Assembly: GCA_000388065.2 (NCBI GenBank)
Contig: KB932213.1
From: Fonticula alba ATCC 38817
Taxonomy: Eukaryota > Protista > Nucleariida
Direction: 5' to 3' (one strand)
DNA: 43,143 nucleotides
Shown: positions 1-41,220 of the stretch, one piece after another
How positions within the stretch are numbered: the stretch's first letter is position 1
Layout: every line of letters begins with the position of its first letter
Translations under genes and position numbers: made by a program
The notes under the pieces: generated by a model
The model's input: the letters and a program-made list of their open reading frames with translations, nothing else
Told to the model about the DNA's origin: nothing
Database searches by the model: none

Positions 1-864
1 GGGTGTCCCCGGGGGAAGCAGGCGCCTTTCCTTCCCCCGCCGTCGGACGCAGGCCTTTACAGACGCTACTTCCGGGCCTTGGGTGTCCCCGGGGGCGCGC
101 CGGCGAGATGCTTCCCTGCCGACTGGAGATCTGGGCGCCTCGGTCCACGGCGGGCGGGGGATGTCTCGCTGGGCGGCCCCGGCATGGGCAGGCGCCTGGC
201 CCATGGTGGGCAGCCAGCCCGGGCGGCGCGGGCGCCATCCTCGCTGGCCTGGCCCCGGACGCCGAGGCCGGCCCTCGCGCGCCCCGGGGCCCGGTAGATG
301 CCCGTCCGGCGCCGCGGGGCGTACGTCCTGCGGGGCGCCGGGGCCCGAGACGTCAGGGCCCGGTCCTCCGGCTGTGGCTCGCCGGCAGCCGCAGGCCGGC
401 CGAGTCGGAGCCCCCGGACGGGCGTCCCGTCGCCCGGTGGCCTTCGTGGCCGTGATGCAGCCATCGGGACGGGGGTCCGGTGCAGCGATGTGGCCCTGTG
501 GCCGGGCGGCGGTGGATGACCTCGAACATGAAGTGGGGGGGAGGCGGGGGCTTGGCCTCGGCCGACGCTGCAGGCGGCGCGCTCGCACGGGCCGGCCGCA
601 CGGCTGTCCGGATCGGCCGCGGGACCCGGCTGCGCCCCTCTGCGCGGGGCCCGCCTCTCGGAGCCTGGCCGACTGCGCGTGCCCGTGCCTCCCCGGTGTG
701 GTGTCTCGCGCGAGCATGCACGCCGGCAGCCCGACGCGGGGCCTCCCCCGGGGATCGGGTGGCGTGTGTGGCTGCCCGCCCTCGACCGGGGGGCCCTCTC
801 CGGCGACCTGGCCGTGCCGGCACACGCGAACATTTTTAAGCGGCGGCCGGATGCCCCTCCCCAT

Positions 865-938
865 GGCCGCGTAGCTCAATTGGATAGAGCACCTGACTAC
901 GGATCAGGAGGTTGTGTGTTCGAGCCGCATCGTGGTCA
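865..938 (+). tRNA. tRNA-Arg(ACG): tRNA-Arg, anticodon ACG
   Basis: Cloverleaf: acceptor stem GGCCGCG/CGTGGTC plus A, D-arm GCTC..GAGC, anticodon stem CCTGA/TCAGG with loop CT-ACG-GA, T-loop TTCGAGC. A T-rich Pol III terminator follows at 941-950. Confidence 0.97.
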
Positions 939-985
939 ACTTTCATTTTTGCGGCCATGGTCAGGGGACGCGGCGCAAAAGGGAA

Positions 986-1058
986 TTCCCATACCGGGAC
1001 TCGAACCCGGGTCTCGTGGGTGAGAGCCACGTATCCTAACCACCTAGACTATATGGGA
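986..1058 (-). tRNA. tRNA-Glu(CTC): tRNA-Glu, anticodon CTC
   Basis: The reverse complement reads TCCCATATAGTCTAGGTGGTTAGGATACGTGGCTCTCACCCACGAGACCCGGGTTCGAGTCCCGGTATGGGAA. Acceptor TCCCATA/TATGGGA, anticodon stem CGTGG/CCACG with loop CT-CTC-AC. T4 lies downstream (aaaa at 977-980 on +). Confidence 0.97.
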
Positions 1059-1695: not shown

Positions 1696-2497
1696 CTCGG
1701 CGTGGCCGGGCCAGCGGGATCGGGTCGGTTGGGATGCACCCTTTGGCCGCAGGAGGCGCCGGCTTTCCGGCCCGCGCACCTCCACCACCACCCCGTAGGC
1801 CGGACAGGGCAGGCACGTTCCCGGCCGACACCCGTCCGGCAAGCGGCGCACCGGGGGCGGCCACGACATGCGTGCTGCCCGCCCGGGACCGGCCGTGGGC
1901 GGGCCACATATCCGAGCATGCGGCCCGGCCGCAAGGCGGGCACCATGCCCACCGAGGCCCGGTGCCCGCACCCGCACCGGCGGACGAGCGTGCGGTCGAG
2001 GCACCGGGCCGAGGTGGTGGTCGTCGCGCCGGGGTCTCGACCGGCGGACAAAATGCCCAGCACCCTCGGTCGCGCGCGCGCCGGCACGGGCGGCCCTCGG
2101 GGCAGGATGCCGTCGCCGGACGGTGGCCGCCGAGCGATCGGCCACATGCCAACGCCCAGCGCGCGGGCCGGACCGCCGGTGTTGGGCGCGCGGCCTGCGC
2201 CATTTGGGCCTGCGGCGCCCCCGTCCCCGGAGGGCCGGCACTCTCGAACCCGCCTCCACCCGCACCCGCATCCCCACACGCCCCTGCATGGCCTGGGGTT
2301 GTTGCTTTGTTTTTTTTTTTCTGTTTTTTTTTATTACCTGCCTCATCTTGCCTGTCGGTACCGCCCCGCGATCGAGGATGGACGACGGCCGCCCGACAAG
2401 CCGGGCTTCGGGGAGTGCCGCGGCGCGCGAGCCGGGCACGCTGGCCCCGGGGCCATCCCCCACGATGGGCACGCCTGCCCGACGAGTAAGGTGCGTT

Positions 2498-2524
2498 CCG
2501 CCGCCGCCGCCGCCGCCGCCGCCG
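2498..2524. repeat. (CCG)9 microsatellite
   Basis: Nine perfect CCG units immediately after a GTGCGT donor-like site at 2491. Confidence 0.9.
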
Positions 2525-2603
2525 CACCGCGGGCCCTGCCTTCGCTCGATCCTCCGCGGGCCGAACGTCTGTCCTGTCTGACGGTTATGGTCCGACATTT
2601 GCC

Positions 2604-5600
2604 ATGGCCGGGCGGCTGGTGGATCTGGCCACCAGTAGCCACAGCGCGTCCGGGCTGCAGGCCGCCTGCTTTGTGGTGGGCCTGGCCGGCGGGTGCGACC
2701 CCCCGGCTGGGCACCAGCAGACGCTGGCCTTCGCGGCGCTGCAGGCCGCAGCCGGTGGGCATCTGGCCGGGCGGCGGGAGCCGCTGCGCCTGGGCGAGGT
2801 GCGTACAGACGGCTGACATGTGCCTCTGCCGTGTCCGGCCCCTGGCTGACGCGTGGCTCCCCCTTGGCCGGAGGCCAGACCTTGTCCCTGGAGGTCGAGG
2901 GTCTTCCGGTGGAGCTGAGCCCGGTTGAGCTCCGCACGGCCGGCGGGGCCACTCGGTCCGGGTCGCTGGCCCCGGGCGCCGAGCTGCTTCTGATCGCCGG
3001 CCCGACGGGGGGCCTGGCCCTGTCGCGTGCGCCGGTGGTGGCGGCACTTCCCTTCCTGGCGCATGCCCCGGCCGACCCGGGCGAAGGGCCCTTTCACATG
3101 GTCAGCCCCTGGCACTGGCCGGAGACCAGCCTCGACGTGCTGCTGGCGCCGGCTGGCGGGCCGGTGGCCCGGGCCCTGGCCGCCCGGCGGCCGGGCACCC
3201 CGGACGGGCGCCTCTACGCATCGCACGCCGGGCGGGTGTATGAAATCCGGTACGGCCGCCTGGTGGGCCCCGGGGAGCGGGGGGGGGAGCCACCGGCGCC
3301 GCTGACTCGCTAACCTTGGGGGTCCCCCTCCTGCCTCGCCTCGCGGGCGCCGGGCGCGCGCGCGTGTGGCCCAGCGTCTGCATGGGGGGCTCGGTTGCCG
3401 GGCTGTCCTTGCGCATGAGCGAGCGCCTGCTCCTCTCGCTGGGCCTGCAGGGCCGCCCGATGGTGCTGGCCCCGTGCGCGGCGCCGCCGGACCTGGCCGT
3501 CGTGTGGCTGGAGACAGATGCGCCCATCCGGCAAATCGACCGGGAGGCCGTCCTGTCGGCGGTGGCGGGCGCGCCGCTGCACGTGGACGAGGTACCTGCC
3601 GGGAGGGGGGGGGAGGGGGGCGGAAAAGGGCATTCGCCCTGGCCGGCCTCGCTGCCGACAGGAAAGAACATGGCTGGCTACTGACGCTCCTTTCCGGCCG
3701 GTGGGCGCACACATGGGCAGGTGGTGCGCTTCGCGGGGCTACGCTTCTCGGCTCGGGTGGTCCGGCTGATGGGTCGCGACTTGCGGCCCGTCTCCACCGG
3801 GGTGGCCGTGTACCCGGGGCCCGGGCACACCATCCTCCATGTGCAGACTCCGTGCGGGGACCCGGGCGACCTGCATCAGCTGGTGACCCTGCAGCCGAGC
3901 GACCCCCGGCGGGAGGCGCTCCTGCTGGAGCCGATGGTCCCGGACCGGGGGATGGCCGCCACCGAGCAGACGCTACTCGTGTCGGCGGGGGTCTTTCGGC
4001 AGGTTGCCAGCTCGGAGGCCCTGTGCCAGGGGGTCGCGCGGTTCCTTTGTCGGGGGATGCTGCTGGACGTGCGGTACGTGCTCCGGGGGGGCAGGACAGG
4101 GGGGGGGGGGGCGCGCGGGGGCGACCGGAAGGGGGCGGAGCGGCCTTCCTCGGTGGAACTGACGCATGCGTTGTCAGCCCCGGCGATGGGATGCGGCCAT
4201 ATGCCATCGCCATCCCGACGGGGGCACGACGGGCGCTGGGCCCGTTCGGGACCGCCCCGCTGGCATTGACCCCGGCCCCGGCGGTGGCGGTGGCCGCGTC
4301 GGTCGAGGTGTCCTTCGGCCCCGAGGCCATGCCGGCCGGGGGGCCACTGCCGGATATGCATCGCTTGAGAGGGGACTTCCTGCGGGCGCACCGCCAGACG
4401 ACCATGCACTTGGGCCAGGTACATGCAGCGATGGTGGCGATGGTAGTCAGCGAGGCAGGTCCAGGGGAGGGGGGGGGGGCACCACGCGCCTTGCCGGCGA
4501 CTGACCCTCCGCTCTGCGGGGCGGTGGCCAGGCGCTGCCCTTCCGGTCGGGCGATGTCGACCTGCTTGCCACCGTCCGGCGAGTTGTCTGGTCGGGCACG
4601 CCAGGGGTCGATCGCCCGGTGGGGCTTCTGCCGGCCGAGGCCTCGGATGGGTGTGCCTGCCTGCAGGTCACCGGCACGGGCCCCCCGGTGTCCGGCGGGC
4701 CGGAGTCGGGGAGCGGCCCGGCCGGGCCCGGTGTGCCGGCGGACGCCGCGCGCCGGTGGCTGCTGGTCGGGGACGCCGCCGCCGGCCCGGGGCTCCTCGG
4801 TCTGGAGGCCAGTGCCAGCCCGCCGGAGGGGCTGGCCCCCGGCCGGGCGTCCGTCAGCATCGGCGACCACCGGCTCCTGTGCGCCCTGGCGGCCGGCGGG
4901 CCGGATGTCTTCCTCCAGGTGAACGGCCACCTGCTGCTGGTTTAGTGCGTGGCACTGCTGGGGCCGGGGGGTGGGTCTAGGAGGCAGGGGCCCGGATGCG
5001 GGGACTACAAAGCACGCATGCGCAGGGCCACTCTGACACGGCAGGGCGCCACAGTCCGGACCCGCACCCGGGGGGCCGGTCGGCGGCCGGCAGTCGAATT
5101 GTCCTCAGCCAGTGGGACTTTGGGTGTATCTTCGGCCAGCAGCAGGTGCTCTGGGCCGCGGTCAGCATGGCCCCGCCGGTGGTGGATCTGGTGGAGGTGG
5201 ACCTGTCCCCGGGGCCGGCTGCCGCTGGGCCCATCTCCCACTCGGCCTTGGTGGCGTCCTTTCGCCAGGCGCTCCAGGGCACGGTCCTGTCCGTGGGTCA
5301 GGTACACACCCATGGGCGAGGGCGCACCCTGTGTGGTCCTTGGCCCCTTTCTTTTTCCTCCCGCAGGGCTCGCGCCATGCATGCACGTCTCCCGGGCCTG
5401 CCCTGCTGACCCGTGTCCATGACGGCCATTGCCCCGCCAGGCGGTCGAGCTGCCGACGCCGGGCGCCACGCTTCCGGGCCACATCTCCAGCCTGGTGGAT
5501 GGGGACCTGCGGCCACTGAAGGCCGGGCTCCTGGCCGCGGGGGACACCTTCGTCTATATGAACGCCCGGGGCGCGGGGTATGGCGTGCTGGATTGCCCGC

Positions 5601-7122
5601 TGTCGGCCCTGATCCGGATGCCACTGCTGGATGCGTACATTCGCCTGCCGGTAGCCGGCGCCCCGGACGTGGACATGAGCCGGGTGAGCCTGCGGCGGCC
5701 GGACATCCGGGTATCGGCGCGGACGATGGGCTCCCTGCGGGCGCACTTCCTCGAGGGCCGACGGCCGATCTTCCTCAACGAGGACTATCAGCTCCGGTGC
5801 GTGGTGCCACCGGCATGGGGCAGCTACATTCGGGGGGCATGGGGGGGGGGGGGGCAAGACGCCGGGCGGCGGGCACGCCATGGCCATATGCTGACCGCCC
5901 CTTTGTGTCGGCAGCCCGGTGGAGGATGGCCGGCTGAGGCTGCGGCACAATCGCGTCCTCCTCGGGCAGGACCTCCTGCCCCCGGCCGGGCCCTACTCTT
6001 TGATGGACACCGAGCCGCCGGAGGTGCTGTCGGTCACCTGCGAGGTGTTCCCGGATGGGGCCGGCCCGCGCTCGGGGCTGGATGTGCGGCTGCTGGAAGA
6101 CGCGCTGCTGCGCGCCCTCCCGCCGGACAATGTCATCCGGGCGAATGTGGTGCGTGCTGGGACGGCTCCCGGGGCACGGGCCAAAGCATGGGCTCTCTCT
6201 CTCTCTCTCTCTCCCTCTCACATATGCACACATGCACGCCCGACGCGGCGCCTGGCGCCCTGTGGCCCCGGCCGGACGCCAGAAGTACTCCGTCCTGCTG
6301 GACCCCCTGGACCGGTCCTCGCGGGTGGACATTTCCGTCCTGTGGATGGAGGGCGCGCGGAAGAACTCCTGCCAGCTGGCGGTCGTGGTGCCGGGGCTGA
6401 CATGGTTCACCTTCAGGCAGCCGCGCCGGGGCCCGGAGGCGCTCGCCTCGCCGGGCCCGCTCCTGGCCCCGGGCCAGCCGCACAAGCTGGTGGTCCGCTG
6501 CAATCCCCGGTGGATGGCCGTCCTCCGGGCGGAGTTCATCCCCACCGGGACCTTGCTGTATGGCGGGCTGATGCTCCCGCGGGATGTGTTCCAGTCGCTG
6601 GGGGAGGCCCTCGGGGAGGCCGCCCCGCCGGAGTGCATGGCCCTTTGGTGCTGCTCGCGGGTGTTCCTGGCCCGGCTGGCCGACACGCACGACACGCCGG
6701 GGGTGGTGCGCCTGTCGGAGGACTTCCGGTCGCATGTGCTGAGCTACCCGGACCTCGGGCCGTACATCACGCACTACCACCAGCCGGAGGCCCTCCGCCT
6801 GAAGGTGGTGCACATGCGGGTGGAAGCGACGGCCGCCGGCCGGGTGGCTGCCCCGGCGGAGGGGGGTCCGAGCCGGGACCAATTGCAAGCGGCCCTGCCG
6901 GCGGCCTTCCCCGACGGGAGCATGGTCCTGCTGGAGCGGCGCCCGGCGCCCGGGCTGCCGGTCACCCTCACGCCGGAGCTGCTGACCGATGGCCAGGGCT
7001 GGCAGATTTCGTGCGGCTTCTTCCACCCGGCCAAGACCCGCGTGCTCTTCTCCGGCCGCGGGGTGGCTGCCTCGTGGCGGCTGGCCGAGGGGGCCCGGGA
7101 CCCGGCGGCCGGTCCACGCTGA
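2604..7122 (+). CDS. Gene A: spliced protein of about 1155 aa, tandem array of Cdc48/p97/NSF-like N-domains (double-psi barrel plus Nc subdomain), no ATPase domain
   Basis: Hand-built exons: 2604-2798, 2879-3249, 3375-3591, 3721-4073, 4178-4418, 4532-4944, 5055-5301, 5441-5796, 5915-6149, 6283-7122 (3468 nt, 1156 codons with stop). All introns are GT-AG, most with a CTGAC/CTAAC branch motif, and junctions match paralogue B. Repeat VDLVEVDL..SALVASFRQALQGTVLSVGQ|AVEL..GLL resembles the NSF Nc subdomain; LMLPRDVFQSL..PGVVRLSEDFRSHV resembles the p97 double-psi barrel (from memory). The 5' end is uncertain (alternative ATG at 2378). Exon structure is well supported; the fold call is inference. 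Confidence 0.8.
6193..6212. repeat. (CT)10 microsatellite in the last intron of gene A
   Basis: Direct reading; it lies inside intron 6150-6282. Confidence 0.9.
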
Positions 7123-7575
7123 GCGGCGGGCCTGCCGGGCGGCGGTGTCGAACTCCAGAAGGGCCAGAATACATGCATTCCGCAGATGGGCGTCTTCCGG
7201 GGGGGGGGACGGGGTGAGGGGAGCCCGGGCACGCGAGCGCGCATGCGGGCGCCCGTGATGTCCCATGCGCGCCTGCCGCTGCGTGGGCAGCTGTCTCAGG
7301 GGGCCGGGGCCGCGCCCGCCGGCCGGGCCTCGGCGGTGGGAATGATCGGGGCTCGCCATCTCATCGGAAAGGGCCCGGGCGCGCGCTGCGGGCGGCGGCC
7401 CATTTTTTGCGGCCCTCCCCGGGACCGGATGCATGGGGCTGGCGGTCTTTTTGTTGTGCCTTTTGTCCGCTGCCCTTTTTTCTTTTTCTGCCCCGCCTTG
7501 TGTGCTGCCCCTGGTGCGATGGGGCCGAAGGCGTCGGATCGCCCCTGGCCATCACTTGGTCCGGGTGGTGCGGCG

Positions 7576-10500
7576 ATGCGCCAGGATTGGAGTGAGACGG
7601 CCCCGCCGGGCGAGCTGCCACCGGCGCCGGGCGAACACCACAGGCTGGCGGCCGCCGGGCGGCAAGTGGACCTGGCCGCCGGGGAGCCGATCCTCGAAGC
7701 GCGGCGCGTGGCCCTTTGCCCGCGTGCTGCCCTGGGGGGGGGGGAGGCGCCCTTTCTCATGCTGCTGTGGTCCCGGTCCTGGTCCGCGGGCCGAGGCCGG
7801 GGGGGGAGGGCGGCTCCCGCGCGGGCCGGCCGACTTCGGGGCGATGCCGACACGCTGGAAGCCCGGCCGGTGGAGGCGGCCCGGCTGGAGGCGGCTTGCT
7901 TGGCCGTGTCGGCCGCGTGCCAGGACGGCCTGGCTGCGAGCCGGGTGCCCCTGGTTCCCTTCGCCGCGCTGGAGGCGGCGCTCCGGGGCGCCCTTGCTGG
8001 GCGCGGCCGGCCGTTGCGCATGGCCGAGGTGCGTCCGCCGGCTCGGGGGGGGGGGGGTTCGGTGTCGCGGGCTTCGCCCGTTCGTTCGGGGCGGTGCGGC
8101 GGGTCGCGTCCTCCGCTGTGTCCGGCCCCCTTGTGCCCGGGGGGCGCATGCAGCAGGCGTGTGGCGCGCGGCTCGGAGGGCCGCAAGCACGGCTGCCCGC
8201 ACCGGGGGCTCCCGGAGCCTGGCCGCATTCCGCTGACCCGGCGCCGACCCTCGACTTGGTGGTCGACGAAGTGGCGCCAAGTCTGGGGGTGGCTGCGCTT
8301 CGCGCGGCCAACGGGCCCACCGGGTGCGGCCTATTCGGCCCCGGGGCCCGAGTCATCCTGGCGGTGCAGTCGGCGGGCAACATGTCGCTGGCGGATGCCC
8401 CGGTGGTCGTGGGCCTGGTCCCGCCCGAGGGGGTGGCCAGCGGGGCCGGCCCTCCCCCGAGGCAGCTGCATGTGGTCGGGGCCAGCCACTGCCCGGAGGC
8501 CAGCCTCGATGTGCCGTTGGCTCCGGTGGGCGGCCCAGCCGCGCGGGTCCTGGCCACCCGGCGGCCGGAGCGGCCTGGCGCATCGTTCTACGTGTCCGGC
8601 GGACAGCGTGTCCTTGAGATCCGGTGCGCTTGTCGAGCAGACGCTTCCGGGGGGGAAGCCCGAACGAAGGGCGGGGGCATCGCATCGCTCGCGCATCCCG
8701 ACACATGGGGCCCGGCATCCGCCCGCGCGCTGCCCTGCCGGGCGCCTCCCTGCGAGCGGGGGAGCGTCTGCTGATGGGGCCCGGCTCGCGCGGGCACCCG
8801 CGGCTGCGTGTGCCGTGCGACGCGCCGCCGGGGCTGGCTGTAATTTGCCTGGAGACCGACTTGGTGTCTCCGCAGCTGGATGAGCCCCGCCGGATGGCCA
8901 TGCTGGCTGGGGCGCCACTTCGCGTGGGCAACGTGCGTCTGGGAGGATGCCTGTGTTTGGCTTCCCCCCTTGGCCGTGCTATCGCCATGCCCTGTCCTGT
9001 GCCCTGGACCATGCGCCGGCCCGCGTCCTGGTTCGCGTCCTCGTTTGACTTGGCTCACCGTCCCCTGCTCCCCTCATACACACTCACACACACACGCACA
9101 CACACACACACACATCGGTCCGGCCTGACGCCAGGACATTCGCCTGTCCGCGCACAGGCGCCTGGTTCGGGTGGCGCGGCTCGTGGACCGGGACTTCAAT
9201 GATGTCCAGTCCGGCGTGGCGCACGGCGCTCCCGAGGCAACCATCATTCATGTGTGGGCCACGCAGGGCGAGCTGCAAGAGCCCCGGGCGCTGGCGGCCC
9301 GGCGGTCGTGCGCCACCCGGCCGGCGGCGGTATCGCTGGAACTCCTGCCCGGGGAGCCGGGCGGTGCGCGCGGCACGCTCTAAGTACCGCCGGCGGCCTT
9401 CCGGCGAGGCGAGTCGCCGGATGCCTTGTCGCGCGGGGTTGCCCGTTTCACCGCGCGCGGGGCTCTGTTCGATGTATGGTGCGAATGTGGTCTGCCTCCT
9501 GGGCGGGGCTGTGCCCTTGGTCTCTCATCCGGGGAGCCTTTCCTTGCCCGGTGGAGGAAGGCAGGGGGGGGGGATCGGCCGTCAGGGCCGGAGACTGACG
9601 TGCCGCAGCCCCAGCCACCTGGTGGCCCGCTTCGCCATTGCCATGCACCCCCCAGGACCTCAGCGCCATCGGGCCCATGCGTATGGCCCCTTGGGCGATG
9701 TTTCCGGCTGCGGGACTGCCGGTGCCCGCGTCGGTGGGGCTGACATTCGCCCTGGACGCGGGACCTGGCGCCTGGGAGCCGTGTTGCGAGGAGCAGCCGT
9801 CCCGGGCCTTCTTGGCCGCGCACGCCGGTGCCACCATGCGCGTGGATCGGGCACACAAGCCGGCGTATTGGGATCCTCCTGCCATGCCGCCCGGCTCGGC
9901 TGCTTCTCACCCCGCCACCCCGACTGGCCATAGCTCCTGCCCTTTGAGTCCCGGAGCGCCACGGTGTTGGCCACGGTCCGGCGGGTCACTTGGCCCGGCG
10001 GGGGGCCCCGGCGGAACGCCCGGTCGGGCGACTGCCCGATGGGCAGCCGGCCGGCGCGCGTCTCACGGTGGTGCCCCGGAGCATCGGTCTCTCCGGGGCC
10101 CGGCGGTGGCTGCTGGTCGTCACGGCGTCCGGTGGCGACGTCGCGTGCGCTGCTGTCTGCCTGGATGTCGGCGTCAGCTCGCGCGCCGGGGCCGTCCCGG
10201 GACGTGCCACCGTCAGTCCCTCCGCCTATCGGGAGCTGCGTGGCCGACTGCCCGGGGGGCGAGGATGCCTTCCTGCTGTCGGGCAATGGGCATGAATTAC
10301 GGCTTGCGTGCGCTGGCGCTGCTTCTCCCCGCATGGGGGCCCGCGAACATGCGTGCTCACCTCCCGTGTCCCTGTGGACGTTGCTCTTGCCTGCCCCGCC
10401 ACCAGCCCCGACCCGGCTCCTCACGGCGACATGCCGCCGCACCGGGTCACCCTCGGGGCATGGGACGCCGAGCGCCTGTCCGGCCGGCATGCCCTGCACT

Positions 10501-12353
10501 GTGCCACCGCCAGCATGCCACCGCCCCAGGTGGCTCGGGCCGAGGCGCACCTCTCCTCGGGCTCGAGGGCCTTCGGTGACATCCGATACGCCAGCGTCAT
10601 GGGAAGCCTGCTGCGGCTGGTGGATGGCAGGATCCTGTCCGTGGGCCAGGTATGCGGGCACCGTGCTGAGTCCCCCGGCCCGGGGCACCCACTCCCCCTC
10701 TTTTTTTTTCTCCCGGCAGCTGGCTGACCCTCGGCTGGGTCGCTTGCGCCGGGAGGGGGGGGGGACATACGCGCAGGAATTCGATCTCCCGGCCGGGGCC
10801 GGGACCCTGCGCGCGCGCATGTCCCAAATGCTGGATGCCCGGTTGCGGCCGCTGCTGTCCGGGGTCCTGTCCATGCGTCGGCGGGTGGCGTTCCTGTATT
10901 TGAGCGTGCCACAGTGGGAGTTCCGTCTGCTGGGCGTGCCGGCGACGGTGCTGCTGCGGCTGCCGCCTCTGGCCTATGGCATCCGGCTGCCGGTGTACGC
11001 CGAGCGCGTCCCCCGGACCTTGGGGCGCGATGACATCCAAGTGCCGGGGCGGACAGTGCGCCTGCTCCGGGCGCACCTCCTTCAGGGCCACTCACCTGTC
11101 TTCCTCAATGGGCATTGGCAAATGACGTCCGTCGCCATGTGCCCCCCCCGGCCGCAGGGGCATGTGCCACGGGCGGTGGGAGCCGCGTGCCGGGGCGGGG
11201 CCGACCTTGGCGGGGCGGCGGCGACCGGGCGGGAGGTTGTCGCGAAAGGCTGACCCCCTTTGCCGGATGGCGGGCCGGCGCGCCGGGAGCAGGCCCCACT
11301 GTGACCCGGCCTTCGGCCTGCCAGACGACCACCTTCTCTTGGGGTCGGACATGCGCCCGACCCCCGACAACACCCTGATCTTGGAGGCGGCGCAGCCGCC
11401 GGAGCTGCTGGCCGTCGCCTGCCTCCTGAAGGCAGACCAGGGGCTTGGCCAGGGGCGGCGGTTGGACCCCGGCCAGCTGGAGGCCCAGCTGTACCAGGGC
11501 CTTCCCGAGGGGAATGTCCTCCAGAAGCACCAGGTCCGCAGGCATGAAGGCCGCCCGGTGGGCTTTGGCCCGCTGGGGGCGTGTGACCAACTTGCTGCGC
11601 CGTACTCCGGCAACGCACCGTCATGCTGCGCGGCGAGGCGGGCGCCCTGGACCACGGGCGCCCGCGACGGGTGGGCGTGGCGTCCACCTGGCAGGCGGAC
11701 ACGGGGTATGCTTGTCGGCCGGCGGGTGTCCTGCTGCCGGGGCGCACGCGGGTGCTCCTTTGGACGGCGGATGGCGAATGGGGCCTGGCCGCGCGGCCGC
11801 ATGGTGTTCCTGGGGGGCCGACTCGGTGGGGGGTCTGAGGCCCTTGTGCCCGCTGCTGGGCCTGTCGAGCGATGTTTTCCCATCCCTGTGCCATGCGCTT
11901 GGGCTTTCGGACTGGCTGCTCGGCGGGTATCTCTTCCTCCAGTGTAACTCCCGGCTCTTTCTGGCTCGGCAGGGGCGGATGTGCACCCTGTCCCGGGGGT
12001 GGTGCGCCTTTGCCGGGGCTTCCATGCGTATGTCTGCTCGGCCGCCGAGGGGGTCACGCTCCTGCACCATGCGCGGCCGCCGTATTGCTGGAGGTGGTCC
12101 ACATGCGCGTGGATCGGGGCCGAGGCCGATGTCCATCTCCCCGGGCCTGGTGCGGGACCTGCGGGCGGCCTTCATGGATGGCAGTGTGGCCTTGCTGGAG
12201 CGGCGGGCCGCTGGCGCCGGGTACTGGGCGGTCCTTGTGCCGGAGCTGCTCCTCGATGCCGATGGCATGGCCATGCCCTGTGGCATGCTTCGACCGGGGA
12301 GGACGCGCCTGTGCGTGCGCATCCCCCGGGCCCGGAGCCGACTTCGCCGTTGA
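7576..12353 (+). pseudogene. Gene B: degenerate tandem paralogue of gene A
   Basis: Colinear peptide matches to A: HCPEASLDVPLAPVGGPAARVL vs HWPETSLDVLLAPAGGPVARAL; LLPFESRSATVLATVRRVTW vs ALPFRSGDVDLLATVRRVVW; AAFMDGSVALLERR vs AAFPDGSMVLLERR. Intron positions are shared. Lesions: in-frame TAA at 9381-9383; frame switches near 9650, 10000, 10255, 11820, 11975, 12080 and 12140; non-AG acceptors at 8245-46, 8714-15 and 11609-10; GC donor at 9851-52. Confidence 0.85.
9078..9114. repeat. Imperfect (CA)n microsatellite in an intron of gene B
   Basis: Direct reading; it lies in intron 8933-9134. Confidence 0.85.
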
Positions 12354-13075
12354 GTGTTGCCTACGTGTGGGAGGCCGCCGGGCCCGGTGGCTGATCCCCG
12401 GCCGGGGAGCCGGACGATACGTCGGTGGCGCGGCTCGTGCTTTGTCGCGGGCTTCAGGCGGGCTTATGTGCCCGTGGTTGAGAGGTGCTGAGGGCGGGGG
12501 ACAGGGAGCCGACAGGGCTGAGTGACTGGCAGATCGGGGGGGGGGTCTTCAGGGCGGCGGACCTGAAGAGCAACATGACTTGGGAGGCAGCATCGAAGGG
12601 CCGACATGGGTTCTTCGTCCGGGTCCGCCCTGGCTGCTTGTGGGTCTGTCGTCGACGAGGCCTGTTCGGGGGAGGGTTCTCTGCCGGCTGCGGATGCCCG
12701 GCGACTGTCTGAGTCATTTCGCGTGCATGAAGTACCGGCAATGGAAGGCCGGTGGCCGGTGGCGGCAATCGGCGACGATGGTGGTCGCCCGGATGGAGGC
12801 GTGCTATGCGCTGGGCTGTGGCAGAGCCTCCGGGATGTGTGGCGCTGCCCAGCCTGTCACATTTCCATCTCTGGGCCGGGGCAAGGGTAAGGCTCTGGGC
12901 CGGCACCCTCCCCCCAGCGAGGCACATCTTGTATGGTTGTGTGTGGCCGAGAGAGTGCGAGTGCAGTCTCCAGGGCAGGGCAGAGGGACGCGAGGGGGTC
13001 GGGCAAAAGAGGCGAGGGTGGGCTGAGGGGCCGATGAAGGCCGGCATGCGTCAACAAAGAGCCCGCCGGGGCTGT

Positions 13076-13076
<1 letters not shown>

Positions 13077-13108
<32 letters not shown>
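13077..13108. repeat. (CA)16 microsatellite
   Basis: Direct reading. Confidence 0.92.
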
Positions 13109-13110
<2 letters not shown>

Positions 13111-13417
13111 GGACATCAGTGATGCTGGGCGATCCGCACCCCCGGCCACCACACGGCGGGCGTGGCATGGATGTCCGGCCAGGCGGATCCTTTCATCTGA
13201 TCGAGGCCTGCCTGTCCGGAGTCGGGGCCGGCGGGGATGCACATGGGGGGTGCACTGGCGCATCGACCTGCGTTGAGGCGCACACGGGCGCCCGGTTGCA
13301 TGGGTGTCGCGGCGCGTGAGCGCCCGTGTTTTGGTGCGTGTGTCCCCCGGGGCGCGGAACAGGCCGCTGGGCGCCCGAGTGGAGGCCGGGAAGATGGCGC
13401 GCGTGGCAAAAGAAGGA

Positions 13418-13490
13418 AGCCCACTGTGGGGCTCGAACCCACGACCCTGGGATTAAGAGTCCCATGCTCTACCAACTGAGCTAAACAGGC
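13418..13490 (-). tRNA. tRNA-Lys(CTT): tRNA-Lys, anticodon CTT
   Basis: The reverse complement reads GCCTGTTTAGCTCAGTTGGTAGAGCATGGGACTCTTAATCCCAGGGTCGTGGGTTCGAGCCCCACAGTGGGCT. Anticodon stem TGGGA/TCCCA with loop CT-CTT-AA; a T-tract follows downstream. Confidence 0.95.
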
Positions 13491-15568
13491 TTGTGGTTAT
13501 GCGCACTCGCGCGGACCTAAAAAGGCCTGGTCTTGCGCGGGCGCCAAGGCCGCCAGCCGGACAGAGACGCCCTGTGGGAGGAGGAAAAAAAGCCTCGCGA
13601 CCCGGCCGACACATGGGGTCGGGTGGCCGGGGCTGGGTGCCTCGTTTCCTCTTCCATGGCACCGGCTTCTGCCCGCCGGGAAGAGCCCCCGGCAGGGGGC
13701 CGGGTGCTGGATTGACCAAGACAGAGCAGGGCCAGCGGGTCGGGCGATGGCGTTCGCCGGCCTACCTGCCGAGGGCGCACCGGATCGCCGGATGCCCGGC
13801 GCCGGGGGGCGGTGTACTGTGGCACGAGGCGATCGGTGACCCTCGGGTGGGCATTGGCCTCGCCGGTGCTCGAGTGTGGGGGCCCTGCTGGGCGGGTTTT
13901 TGCAGACCGGCCTCGCACCTCGGGCGAGATCCACAGGAGCCATGCGCGCGCCCGTTGGGGTGTCGGGCTCCTCGGGAAAAAGGCACGGTAGGGAGGGAGT
14001 CGGGCCCCGCCTCGCACGAGGCTGCCACAGAGCGAGCGGCCTTGTCGGGGGCACGCCCATGCCGCGGCGGTCGGCCGGGTGAGGTGGGCAGATGGGTACC
14101 ATTGCCAGGGACACCAACAGCCAGGCGCCTCGGGTCAAGATCGCGGAATGGGGCGCTGAACGAGGGTGGCGGGGTGGGTGGCTTCCCAGGACGGGAGGGC
14201 CGACAGGGCACGCTTAAGGGGGGGCTACCGTCTTGAGAGCACACACCGCATGGGGGGTTGCTTTGGGACGCTGGCGCGGGCGCACGGGCGCGTGTAGGGC
14301 CTCTCACGCGAGGCGCATCGCTTGGATGCGGCCCCCTGTGTGCTGGGTGTCCCTCAGAATGCATGATCCGGCACAGGCACCGGCGCCCAGGCGGAGGGCT
14401 CGAAGGCCCGGCCGAGTTTTCCCGGGGCTGCGCGGCGGCGGGCCACTGCTGCCCGTGCGTCTGCCAGCATCGACGTGGCCTTCCATGGCAGTGCGCCACG
14501 CTGGAGTGCCCCGAGGGGGCATCATCCTCGGCCAGGGCTCCTAGCGTCTACGGTGCCTGCCACAGCAGTGTAAACGGGGGGGGGGGCAGAATATCCTCGA
14601 CATCGACACCATGCCGATTGGGGGCGTCCGCACTGATTGAGGACCACTGTCATCGATGTGCATCTTCTCTGAGGGGGGGGCGGCGTGGAGCGACAGGTGG
14701 GTGCGCGGTGATATGTCCCCAGTGCGGCGATGGGCGTGATAGGGGGGGATTGCGGCGCCGGAGCCACACATGCAGGGGCGCGGGCGTGCCAGGGGCACAG
14801 TGGTGCGATGAGGCGCGGGAAAGGGGTGCGGGGTGTATTTGCCCGAAGTCCCGAGGCAGGTGCGGCTGCCTGCACATCGAACAAAGCCCCGAGCCGGGTG
14901 CACGACTCCCGGGCCAGTTGTAGTGCGTTCGGCGTGGGTGGAATGTGCCGGGGGCCCAGTCCGTCTCCAACCGCGGGGCCGTCCTCGGTAAGATCAGCAG
15001 CAGGTGGGTGGGTGCACCCCGTGCAAGGGCGGAGAGGGGGGATCTGGAGCGCTTGCCTGGGCTGCTTGCCGGAGATCGACCACGTCCCAGAGCGGAGACG
15101 CAGCTTGTTGAGGGTGTGGGAGAGGCGCAACAGGTGGAGCAGCATCGAGAGCTGACACCGAGGCGCAGGGGAGCGACCCGGCAAAGGGGAGGGCGGGGCA
15201 GTTCGGGCCGGCCCCGGCGGCCTGGGCTGAGGCCCACGCGCCGGGTGGGGCATTCCCCGCCGGCCGGGGCCATCCTCCCGGCATGGGGCAAGCCTCGCCA
15301 AGGGAGGAAACCCGTGGCCCTGGCGAGAAGTGGACCGGGGCCAGGAGGCCAAAGGGGGGCTCTAAAGGGGGCAGGCGACGAGGACGACAGAAGAGAAAGA
15401 AGCGGACCCAGAAGCCAGGCAGGCTCCCCGGGAGATTTAGGCGGAGGGATGCCCCCGTCCCTGGGGCGGTAGACGCCGGGGACCGTGGCCTCGGTTGCCA
15501 GCGGGGCGACGCATCCCCGCCTTGTGCAGGGCCACGGAGCCTGACACGGATCACCAGCGGGAACGGCC

Positions 15569-35001: not shown

Positions 35002-35074
35002 GGGGGCGTAGCTCAAATGGTAGAGCGGCCGCTTAGCATGCGGCAGGCAGGGGGATCGATACCCTCCGCCTCCA
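35002..35074 (+). tRNA. tRNA-Ala(AGC): tRNA-Ala, anticodon AGC
   Basis: Acceptor GGGGGCG/CGCCTCC with the G3:U70 alanine identity pair. Anticodon stem GCCGC/GCGGC with loop TT-AGC-AT. The ATCGATA T-loop (A54) is typical of eukaryotic tRNA-Ala(AGC). Confidence 0.95.
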
Positions 35075-37228: not shown

Positions 37229-37768
37229 NNNNNNNNNNNNNNNNNNNNNNNNNNNNNNNNNNNNNNNNNNNNNNNNNNNNNNNNNNNNNNNNNNNNNNNN
37301 NNNNNNNNNNNNNNNNNNNNNNNNNNNNNNNNNNNNNNNNNNNNNNNNNNNNNNNNNNNNNNNNNNNNNNNNNNNNNNNNNNNNNNNNNNNNNNNNNNNN
37401 NNNNNNNNNNNNNNNNNNNNNNNNNNNNNNNNNNNNNNNNNNNNNNNNNNNNNNNNNNNNNNNNNNNNNNNNNNNNNNNNNNNNNNNNNNNNNNNNNNNN
37501 NNNNNNNNNNNNNNNNNNNNNNNNNNNNNNNNNNNNNNNNNNNNNNNNNNNNNNNNNNNNNNNNNNNNNNNNNNNNNNNNNNNNNNNNNNNNNNNNNNNN
37601 NNNNNNNNNNNNNNNNNNNNNNNNNNNNNNNNNNNNNNNNNNNNNNNNNNNNNNNNNNNNNNNNNNNNNNNNNNNNNNNNNNNNNNNNNNNNNNNNNNNN
37701 NNNNNNNNNNNNNNNNNNNNNNNNNNNNNNNNNNNNNNNNNNNNNNNNNNNNNNNNNNNNNNNNNNNN
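37229..37768. other. Assembly gap (540 N)
   Basis: Run of N. Confidence 1.
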
Positions 37769-40374: not shown

Positions 40375-40384
40375 NNNNNNNNNN
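40375..40384. other. Assembly gap (10 N)
   Basis: Run of N. Confidence 1.
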
Positions 40385-41180: not shown

Positions 41181-41220
41181 NNNNNNNNNNNNNNNNNNNN
41201 NNNNNNNNNNNNNNNNNNNN
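41181..41220. other. Assembly gap (40 N)
   Basis: Run of N. Confidence 1.

Follow-up and report, generated by a model that had tools for sequence, protein, structure and literature searches.

Positions 2604–7122 of the analysed DNA, a 43,143-nt stretch of contig KB932213.1 from the nucleariid protist Fonticula alba ATCC 38817 (the window), hold an intact, transcribed gene of ten exons on the + strand, here called gene A. Its product is a soluble protein of 121 kDa, for which no membrane span is predicted and which has no nucleotide-binding loop. The gene expanded as a two-exon cassette of ~197 codons was duplicated in tandem; the copies have diverged almost beyond recognition, each still matching its positional counterpart in a tandem paralogue, B. 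The repeat units are tentatively read, with low confidence, as modules resembling the N-domain of the Cdc48/p97 unfoldases.

The GC content of the window is 63–75% over most of its length and all six reading frames are mostly open, so that open reading frames alone are no proof of a gene. The model of gene A was rebuilt independently by comparing the three-frame translations of 2400–7300 with those of 7100–12700, which yielded colinear conserved blocks, each in one frame only. Linking the blocks of gene A through in-phase GT..AG pairs resulted in ten exons (Table 1), with a coding sequence (CDS) of 3468 nt and a product of 1155 amino acids (aa). The reading frame is closed by a TGA at 7120–7122, downstream of which the next coding sequence is paralogue B. 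The nine introns are all of the GT..AG type with a CTGAC-like branch site and have a GC content of 0.73, while in every one of the ten exons the GC content at third codon positions (GC3) is 0.87–0.95 and that at second positions (GC2) 0.45–0.61. Exon 1, with a donor GAG/GTGCGT at 2799 and a GC3 of 0.89, is 43% identical to positions 7819–8034 of B. A candidate alternative first exon would place 38 residues instead of the first 14; it is in frame and without RNA support. Just upstream of the likely starts of both paralogues there are T-rich (pyrimidine) tracts, and the layout is the same in the two genes: a tract at 2300–2345 followed by ATG 2378/2465 in A, and a tract at 7405–7495 followed by ATG 7519 in B. 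These tracts may represent a promoter or 5′ element that is conserved within DNA of otherwise 75% GC.

The RNA data consist of four small runs from one study. RNA contigs on gene A fall within 5143–6915, with spans at 5143–5294, 5478–5724 and 5914–6149. The loose end GACTATCAGCTCC connects 5796 to 5915, across intron 8, and a joint at 6149/6283, which skips intron 9 (6150–6282), is found in three runs. For this intron, one run has an alternative acceptor 3 nt downstream (6149/6286), a NAGNAG-type choice; the longer skip drops an AAG codon and so one lysine, a residue that occurs only about six times in the protein. A repeat tract at 6185–6227, also in the ninth intron, was skipped in the placement of the RNA reads. 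No RNA in the four runs supports the five 5′ exons, the final 205 nt of the CDS or the 3′ end of the gene. The contigs of all four runs end within 15 nt of one another, at 6901–6915, 205 nt short of the stop and with no loose ends; this shared end could be due to a drop of coverage in very GC-rich sequence or to a branch of the assembly graph.

A gene model in DNA of 75% GC might be an open-reading-frame artefact to which no protein corresponds, as the largely open six frames and the five 5′ exons lacking RNA support would allow. This is highly improbable, however, as the RNA contig joints lie exactly at the predicted GT..AG introns 8 and 9, the difference between GC3 and GC2 extends to all ten exons, the conservation with B is restricted to the predicted exons and frames, and the nine canonical introns carry branch-site motifs. 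Together, the independent ten-exon model and the RNA at introns 8 and 9 bear out the spliced gene that the original prediction, made from the sequence alone, had placed at 2604–7122, and every peptide quoted there is present in the product. The protein has no hydrophobic span, the highest Kyte-Doolittle mean over 19 residues being 1.53. Leucine, alanine, glycine, proline, valine and arginine make up 64% of its residues, with 0.5% lysine and 0.7% asparagine; this composition may be only a reflection of GC pressure.

The repeated organization of gene A is written in its introns, the phases of which alternate strictly (0,2,0,2,0,2,0,2,0). The phase-0 introns are located after aa 65, 261, 459, 679 and 876, with spacings of 196, 198, 220 and 197, and the phase-2 introns at aa 189, 379, 597 and 798, so that long exons (353–413 nt) alternate with short ones (217–247 nt). 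Four cassettes are thereby delimited, each bounded by phase-0 introns, containing one internal phase-2 intron and having a length that is a multiple of three; a cassette with such bounds and length stays in frame when it is duplicated. Of the six segments of the form ...xLxxGx listed in the original prediction, each stops precisely where a phase-0 intron begins, save for the one in the last exon, which stops at residue 1094. Only the closing part of a unit is encoded by the first exon. In the last exon, the fifth unit is followed by a 61-aa tail in which the opening segment of the long exons recurs and which aligns with all their starts. Gene A thus resembles known exon-cassette repeat genes, which have one or two exons per repeat and symmetric phases, in its phase-0 bounds and cassette lengths; it differs from them in that the cassette comprises two exons around an internal phase-2 intron, and from LRR or ARM cassettes in that its repeat is far more diverged.

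At the level of the sequence, the repeat is marginal. Smith-Waterman scores between units are no higher than those of shuffles (z>2.6 for 2 pairs out of 21), and no period is seen in a dot plot of the protein. When each unit was represented by its A and B copies, unit-versus-unit comparison by hhalign gave P values of 0.008–0.7, with 10 of the 15 best alignments in register. In hidden Markov models (HMMs) built with one unit left out, the left-out copy of the first segment, with which the long exon begins, was found in place in three of six cases; for the helix–strand segment at the end of the short exon this occurred in one of six, with three more as second or third hit, and for each of the other two segments in none of five. 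The claimed period of ~197 aa therefore stands in the gene structure, through the spacing of the phase-0 introns, and remains marginal as a sequence repeat by Smith-Waterman and dot plot. A shorter period of 98 aa, corresponding to one exon, had emerged from a MAFFT alignment that stacked long on short exons and was rejected: long versus short exons gave P 0.49 in hhalign and the four sub-segments are mutually unlike.

Regarding the fold of the unit, the N-domain of Cdc48, p97, VAT and NSF is composed of a double-psi β-barrel subdomain (Nn) and a β-clam subdomain (Nc), which correspond to the Pfam families CDC48_N (PF02359) and CDC48_2 (PF02933). Each unit of gene A would be a mixed α/β module. 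The half that spans the phase-0 intron is predicted to contain a strand, a loop, an amphipathic helix, a “G-x-P-h-x-h-G-D/E” strand and a three-strand meander, and so appears to be built like the β-α-β(3) Nc subdomain of the Cdc48/VAT N-domains. This Nc-like module begins with an “APP-x-h-x-V” strand, continues into the helix, crosses the intron and closes with the three-strand meander; 11 such modules align over their full length. Their profile was compared by hhalign, on spliced sequences, with an archaeal set drawn from 120 loci bearing the Cdc48 motif EM[IV]ELPLxHPELF, which comprised 69 N-domains of 170–240 aa from proteins of >650 aa. The helix and the “G-x-P-h-x-x-G-D/E” strand fall onto the Nc helix and its “gRPv-kGD” strand in a weak match (score 19–20, P 0.005–0.007), which under relaxed settings extends colinearly over 71–78 columns. 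Among 13 windows along the 727-column Cdc48 alignment, the two Nc windows scored best (19.7–19.8, the others 9–16). None of 150 column-shuffled queries reached the Nc score (mean 7.1, maximum 14.3), and the reversed query and reversed template scored 11.9 and 10.1, respectively. The match is a lead, not proof of family membership.

The units share further traits with a Cdc48-type N-domain, namely a length of about 180–200 aa and an order of predicted elements that can be matched to it one-to-one by eye. Unit 5 can be placed in this way, element for element, on an archaeal N-domain, a fit by eye that is not a test.

Several results weigh against N-domain-like units. The Nc match itself has an hhalign probability of only 3–5% and a confident core of 24 columns. 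The barrel-like segments gave P 0.88 against the 69 archaeal Nn subdomains, and their sub-segments P 0.4–0.9, with a poor query alignment. For the N-domains claimed in the original prediction, there is a weak and specific signal in the Nc half and no signal in the double-psi half. The check proposed there against CDC48_N, CDC48_2, PEX-1N and UFD1 came out negative, with no Pfam match to any of them at E<=10 on any of the ten exons, including the last, which holds a whole unit and is the only one in that search unsplit by introns. A search of NCBIfam was blank, profile searches of PDB sequences with alignments of the short exons, the long exons and the last exon found no match, and HMMs of the 69 archaeal N-domains scored below zero on the protein of gene A, with no domain found. 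The residue-by-residue mapping onto VAT and p97 was made by eye. Finally, so extreme a composition, with six amino acids providing almost two thirds of the residues, favours spurious resemblance of motifs.

Structure prediction, which had also been proposed as a check, was carried out on the last exon (6283–7119). The mean predicted local distance difference test score (pLDDT) of the AlphaFold2 models was 36.1 with 4 alignment rows and 36.8 with 12, these rows being fragments, as introns interrupt every unit except the last, and having been misplaced by MAFFT. Foldseek on this poor model returned only matches with E>1 and a template modelling (TM) score of about 0.1, that is, noise. Low confidence and noise are further points on the unfavourable side, and the check as such speaks neither for nor against the predicted fold. 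Both low-confidence models have a helix at residues 198–208 of the exon, the position expected for the Nc helix, and in the second, an unreliable model as well, it is followed by three strands.

The same models are mostly β, in keeping with a different proposal, by which the units would be concanavalin-like β-sandwiches of the galectin, SPRY/B30.2 or Neuralized-homology type, arranged as in multi-NHR (Neuralized-homology) proteins or tandem-repeat lectins, and the protein, with no relation to AAA+ N-domains, a multivalent binder of ligands or glycans. Such arrays likewise carry several β-rich binding modules of 130–200 aa per chain. They are also the clusters nearest to the last exon by language-model features, below the threshold of the tool: for the whole exon and for two parts of it galectin came first in all three (0.74 for the whole exon, 0.82 for residues 160–268), which counts against Cdc48-like units as well, and was followed by Neuralized, SPRY, Methyltransf_FA and TSP_C, all of them β-sandwich families. 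However, these scores are under 0.9, the tool's mark for a mere lead, and one third of shuffled proteins reach 0.8. No match to Gal-bind_lectin, SPRY or Neuralized was found in Pfam at E<=10, and gene A lacks a profile match to such arrays. In addition, each unit has conserved amphipathic helix-like segments (residues 100–113 and 198–208 of the last exon in both models), which sandwiches normally do not contain. We consider β-sandwich units rather unlikely.

A lineage-restricted, fast-evolving repeat protein, the module of which has no detectable relative and is maybe new or partly disordered, has to be given considerable weight, even if it falls short of being probable. The likeness to N-domains would then be a convergence of short β-hairpin/helix motifs in sequence rich in alanine, glycine, proline, leucine and arginine. 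This would agree with the absence of any family, PDB or metagenome match, with the low pLDDT (36–37), with units that can barely be aligned with one another, and with a neighbouring copy that is decaying, as expected of a dispensable young family. No relatives of the last exon were found among candidate proteins of 153–488 aa, nor of exon 5, contained in a 538-aa stop-free carrier, among proteins of 296–941 aa, two ranges that leave full-length proteins of ~1155 aa outside; none were found in metagenome contigs. On the other hand, the Nc-specific profile signal exceeds its controls, the strong coding signatures, together with splicing that is intact across all ten exons, speak for a folded and selected product, and the homologue searches took in only proteins under 941 aa, shorter than the full-length product of ~1155 aa.

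N-domain-like units, the reading that we favour, would in gene A stand without a motor. No match to the Walker A motif GxxxxGK[ST] was obtained in any of the window's six frames, in a scan that a P-loop split by an intron would escape, in agreement with the original observation that neither gene A nor its paralogue carries it. The in-frame stop at 7120–7122 closes the product, and no RNA loose end in the four runs points onward. The description of the protein as ATPase-less consequently holds as far as it can be tested, and gene A is not placed N-terminal to one or two AAA+ domains.

Cdc48-type N-domains differ from the units of gene A in this respect, in being present once per chain instead of five to six times, and in that gene A has no significant match to either of their Pfam models and no signal in its Nn half. 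Closer in number are Pex1 and Pex6, which have two consecutive N-domains, the second of them highly diverged (PMC5070193; PMC9265785). They offer a precedent for tandem duplication of the N-domain, with copies that have diverged until only their secondary structure gives them away, but their two copies are always followed by the D1 and D2 ATPase domains, in contrast to the up to six copies and no ATPase of gene A. We know of no precedent for an array of N-domains without a motor.

The paralogue behind gene A exists, as had been claimed, and follows it block by block. Its first exon is longer than that of A, with extra sequence ahead of the first helix–strand segment that has no counterpart in A. 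An in-frame TAA is found at 9381–9383, intron 2 has no in-phase AG acceptor, there is no GT at the donor position of intron 5, and the frame changes at ~10002–10255, 11975, 12079–12082 and 12126–12132, inside what are single exons in A. No RNA contigs cover 7100–12700 in the four runs that cover A, which makes this region at the same time a silent-stretch control. Because of the stop, the lost splice signals, the frame changes and the missing RNA contigs, B is probably a pseudogene, a decaying copy, unless the assembly contains indel errors in this stretch of 72–75% GC. (AC)n/(CA)n microsatellites are located at 9078–9114 and 13077–13108, one of them inside the third intron of B.

The window also contains four transfer RNA (tRNA) genes. 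Those for tRNA-Arg and tRNA-Glu form a head-to-head pair just upstream of gene A, and between this pair and the gene lies a tandem repeat with a 25-nt unit (5.2 copies, 90% identity; 1567–1696). Runs of N, which are assembly gaps, occupy 37229–37768, 40375–40384 and 41181–41220; the first is the cause of an apparent drop of the GC content to 30% at 37–38 kb.

Table 1. Coordinates of gene A, its cassettes, paralogue B and the tRNA genes, counted from the first letter of the window
Feature	Position	Strand	Description
Gene A, exons 1–5	2604–2798, 2879–3249, 3375–3591, 3721–4073, 4178–4418	+	
Gene A, exons 6–10	4532–4944, 5055–5301, 5441–5796, 5915–6149, 6283–7122	+	
Exon 1	2604–2798	+	65 aa from ATG 2604; only the helix–strand segment ending EPLRLGE; putative 5′ end
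Candidate alternative first exon	2378–2490	+	ATG 2378 or 2465; donor AAG/GTGCGT at 2491; acceptor 2644
Cassette 1	2879–3249 + 3375–3591	+	196 codons, 588 nt; conserved with B 8244–8624, 8732–8932
Cassette 2	3721–4073 + 4178–4418	+	198 codons, 594 nt; conserved with B 9135–9476, 9656–9850
Cassette 3	4532–4944 + 5055–5301	+	220 codons, 660 nt; conserved with B 9934–10299, 10404–10649
Cassette 4	5441–5796 + 5915–6149	+	197 codons, 591 nt; RNA-covered in both exons
Last exon	6283–7122	+	279 aa and stop; GC3 0.94; intron-free fifth unit, complete, ending GSMVLLE at 6936
Paralogue B	7519–~12350	+	Colinear with A block by block, 30–50% identity
tRNA-Arg (ACG)	864–940		
tRNA-Glu (CTC)	986–1058		
tRNA-Lys (CTT)	13415–13491		
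tRNA-Ala (AGC)	35002–35074		

If the other half of each unit were a diverged barrel, gene A would encode a chain of five complete N-domain-like modules and a partial one, with no motor, and the most plausible role of this chain would be that of a passive platform for multivalent binding, not that of an enzyme. It is conceivable, though doubtful, that five to six N-domains of the Cdc48/p97 type, joined in one independent chain devoid of an ATPase, imitate in covalent form the crown of N-domains on a hexameric unfoldase. Such a chain could titrate or cluster partners of the UBX, SHP, SNAP or ubiquitin type and would be a member of a small gene family that duplicates locally. In that case it would be, to our knowledge, the first protein with many copies of the cofactor-docking module of the Cdc48-family unfoldases without the motor, providing a natural tool and, in a decoy or scaffold role, a new regulatory logic for a machine central to proteostasis. 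If the units are not N-domains, gene A is still a clean case of a two-exon, phase-symmetric cassette that was amplified in tandem and diverged almost to randomness. With its decaying sister copy beside it, such a set of diverged cassettes is useful, though unsurprising, for the study of the birth and loss of repeat proteins.

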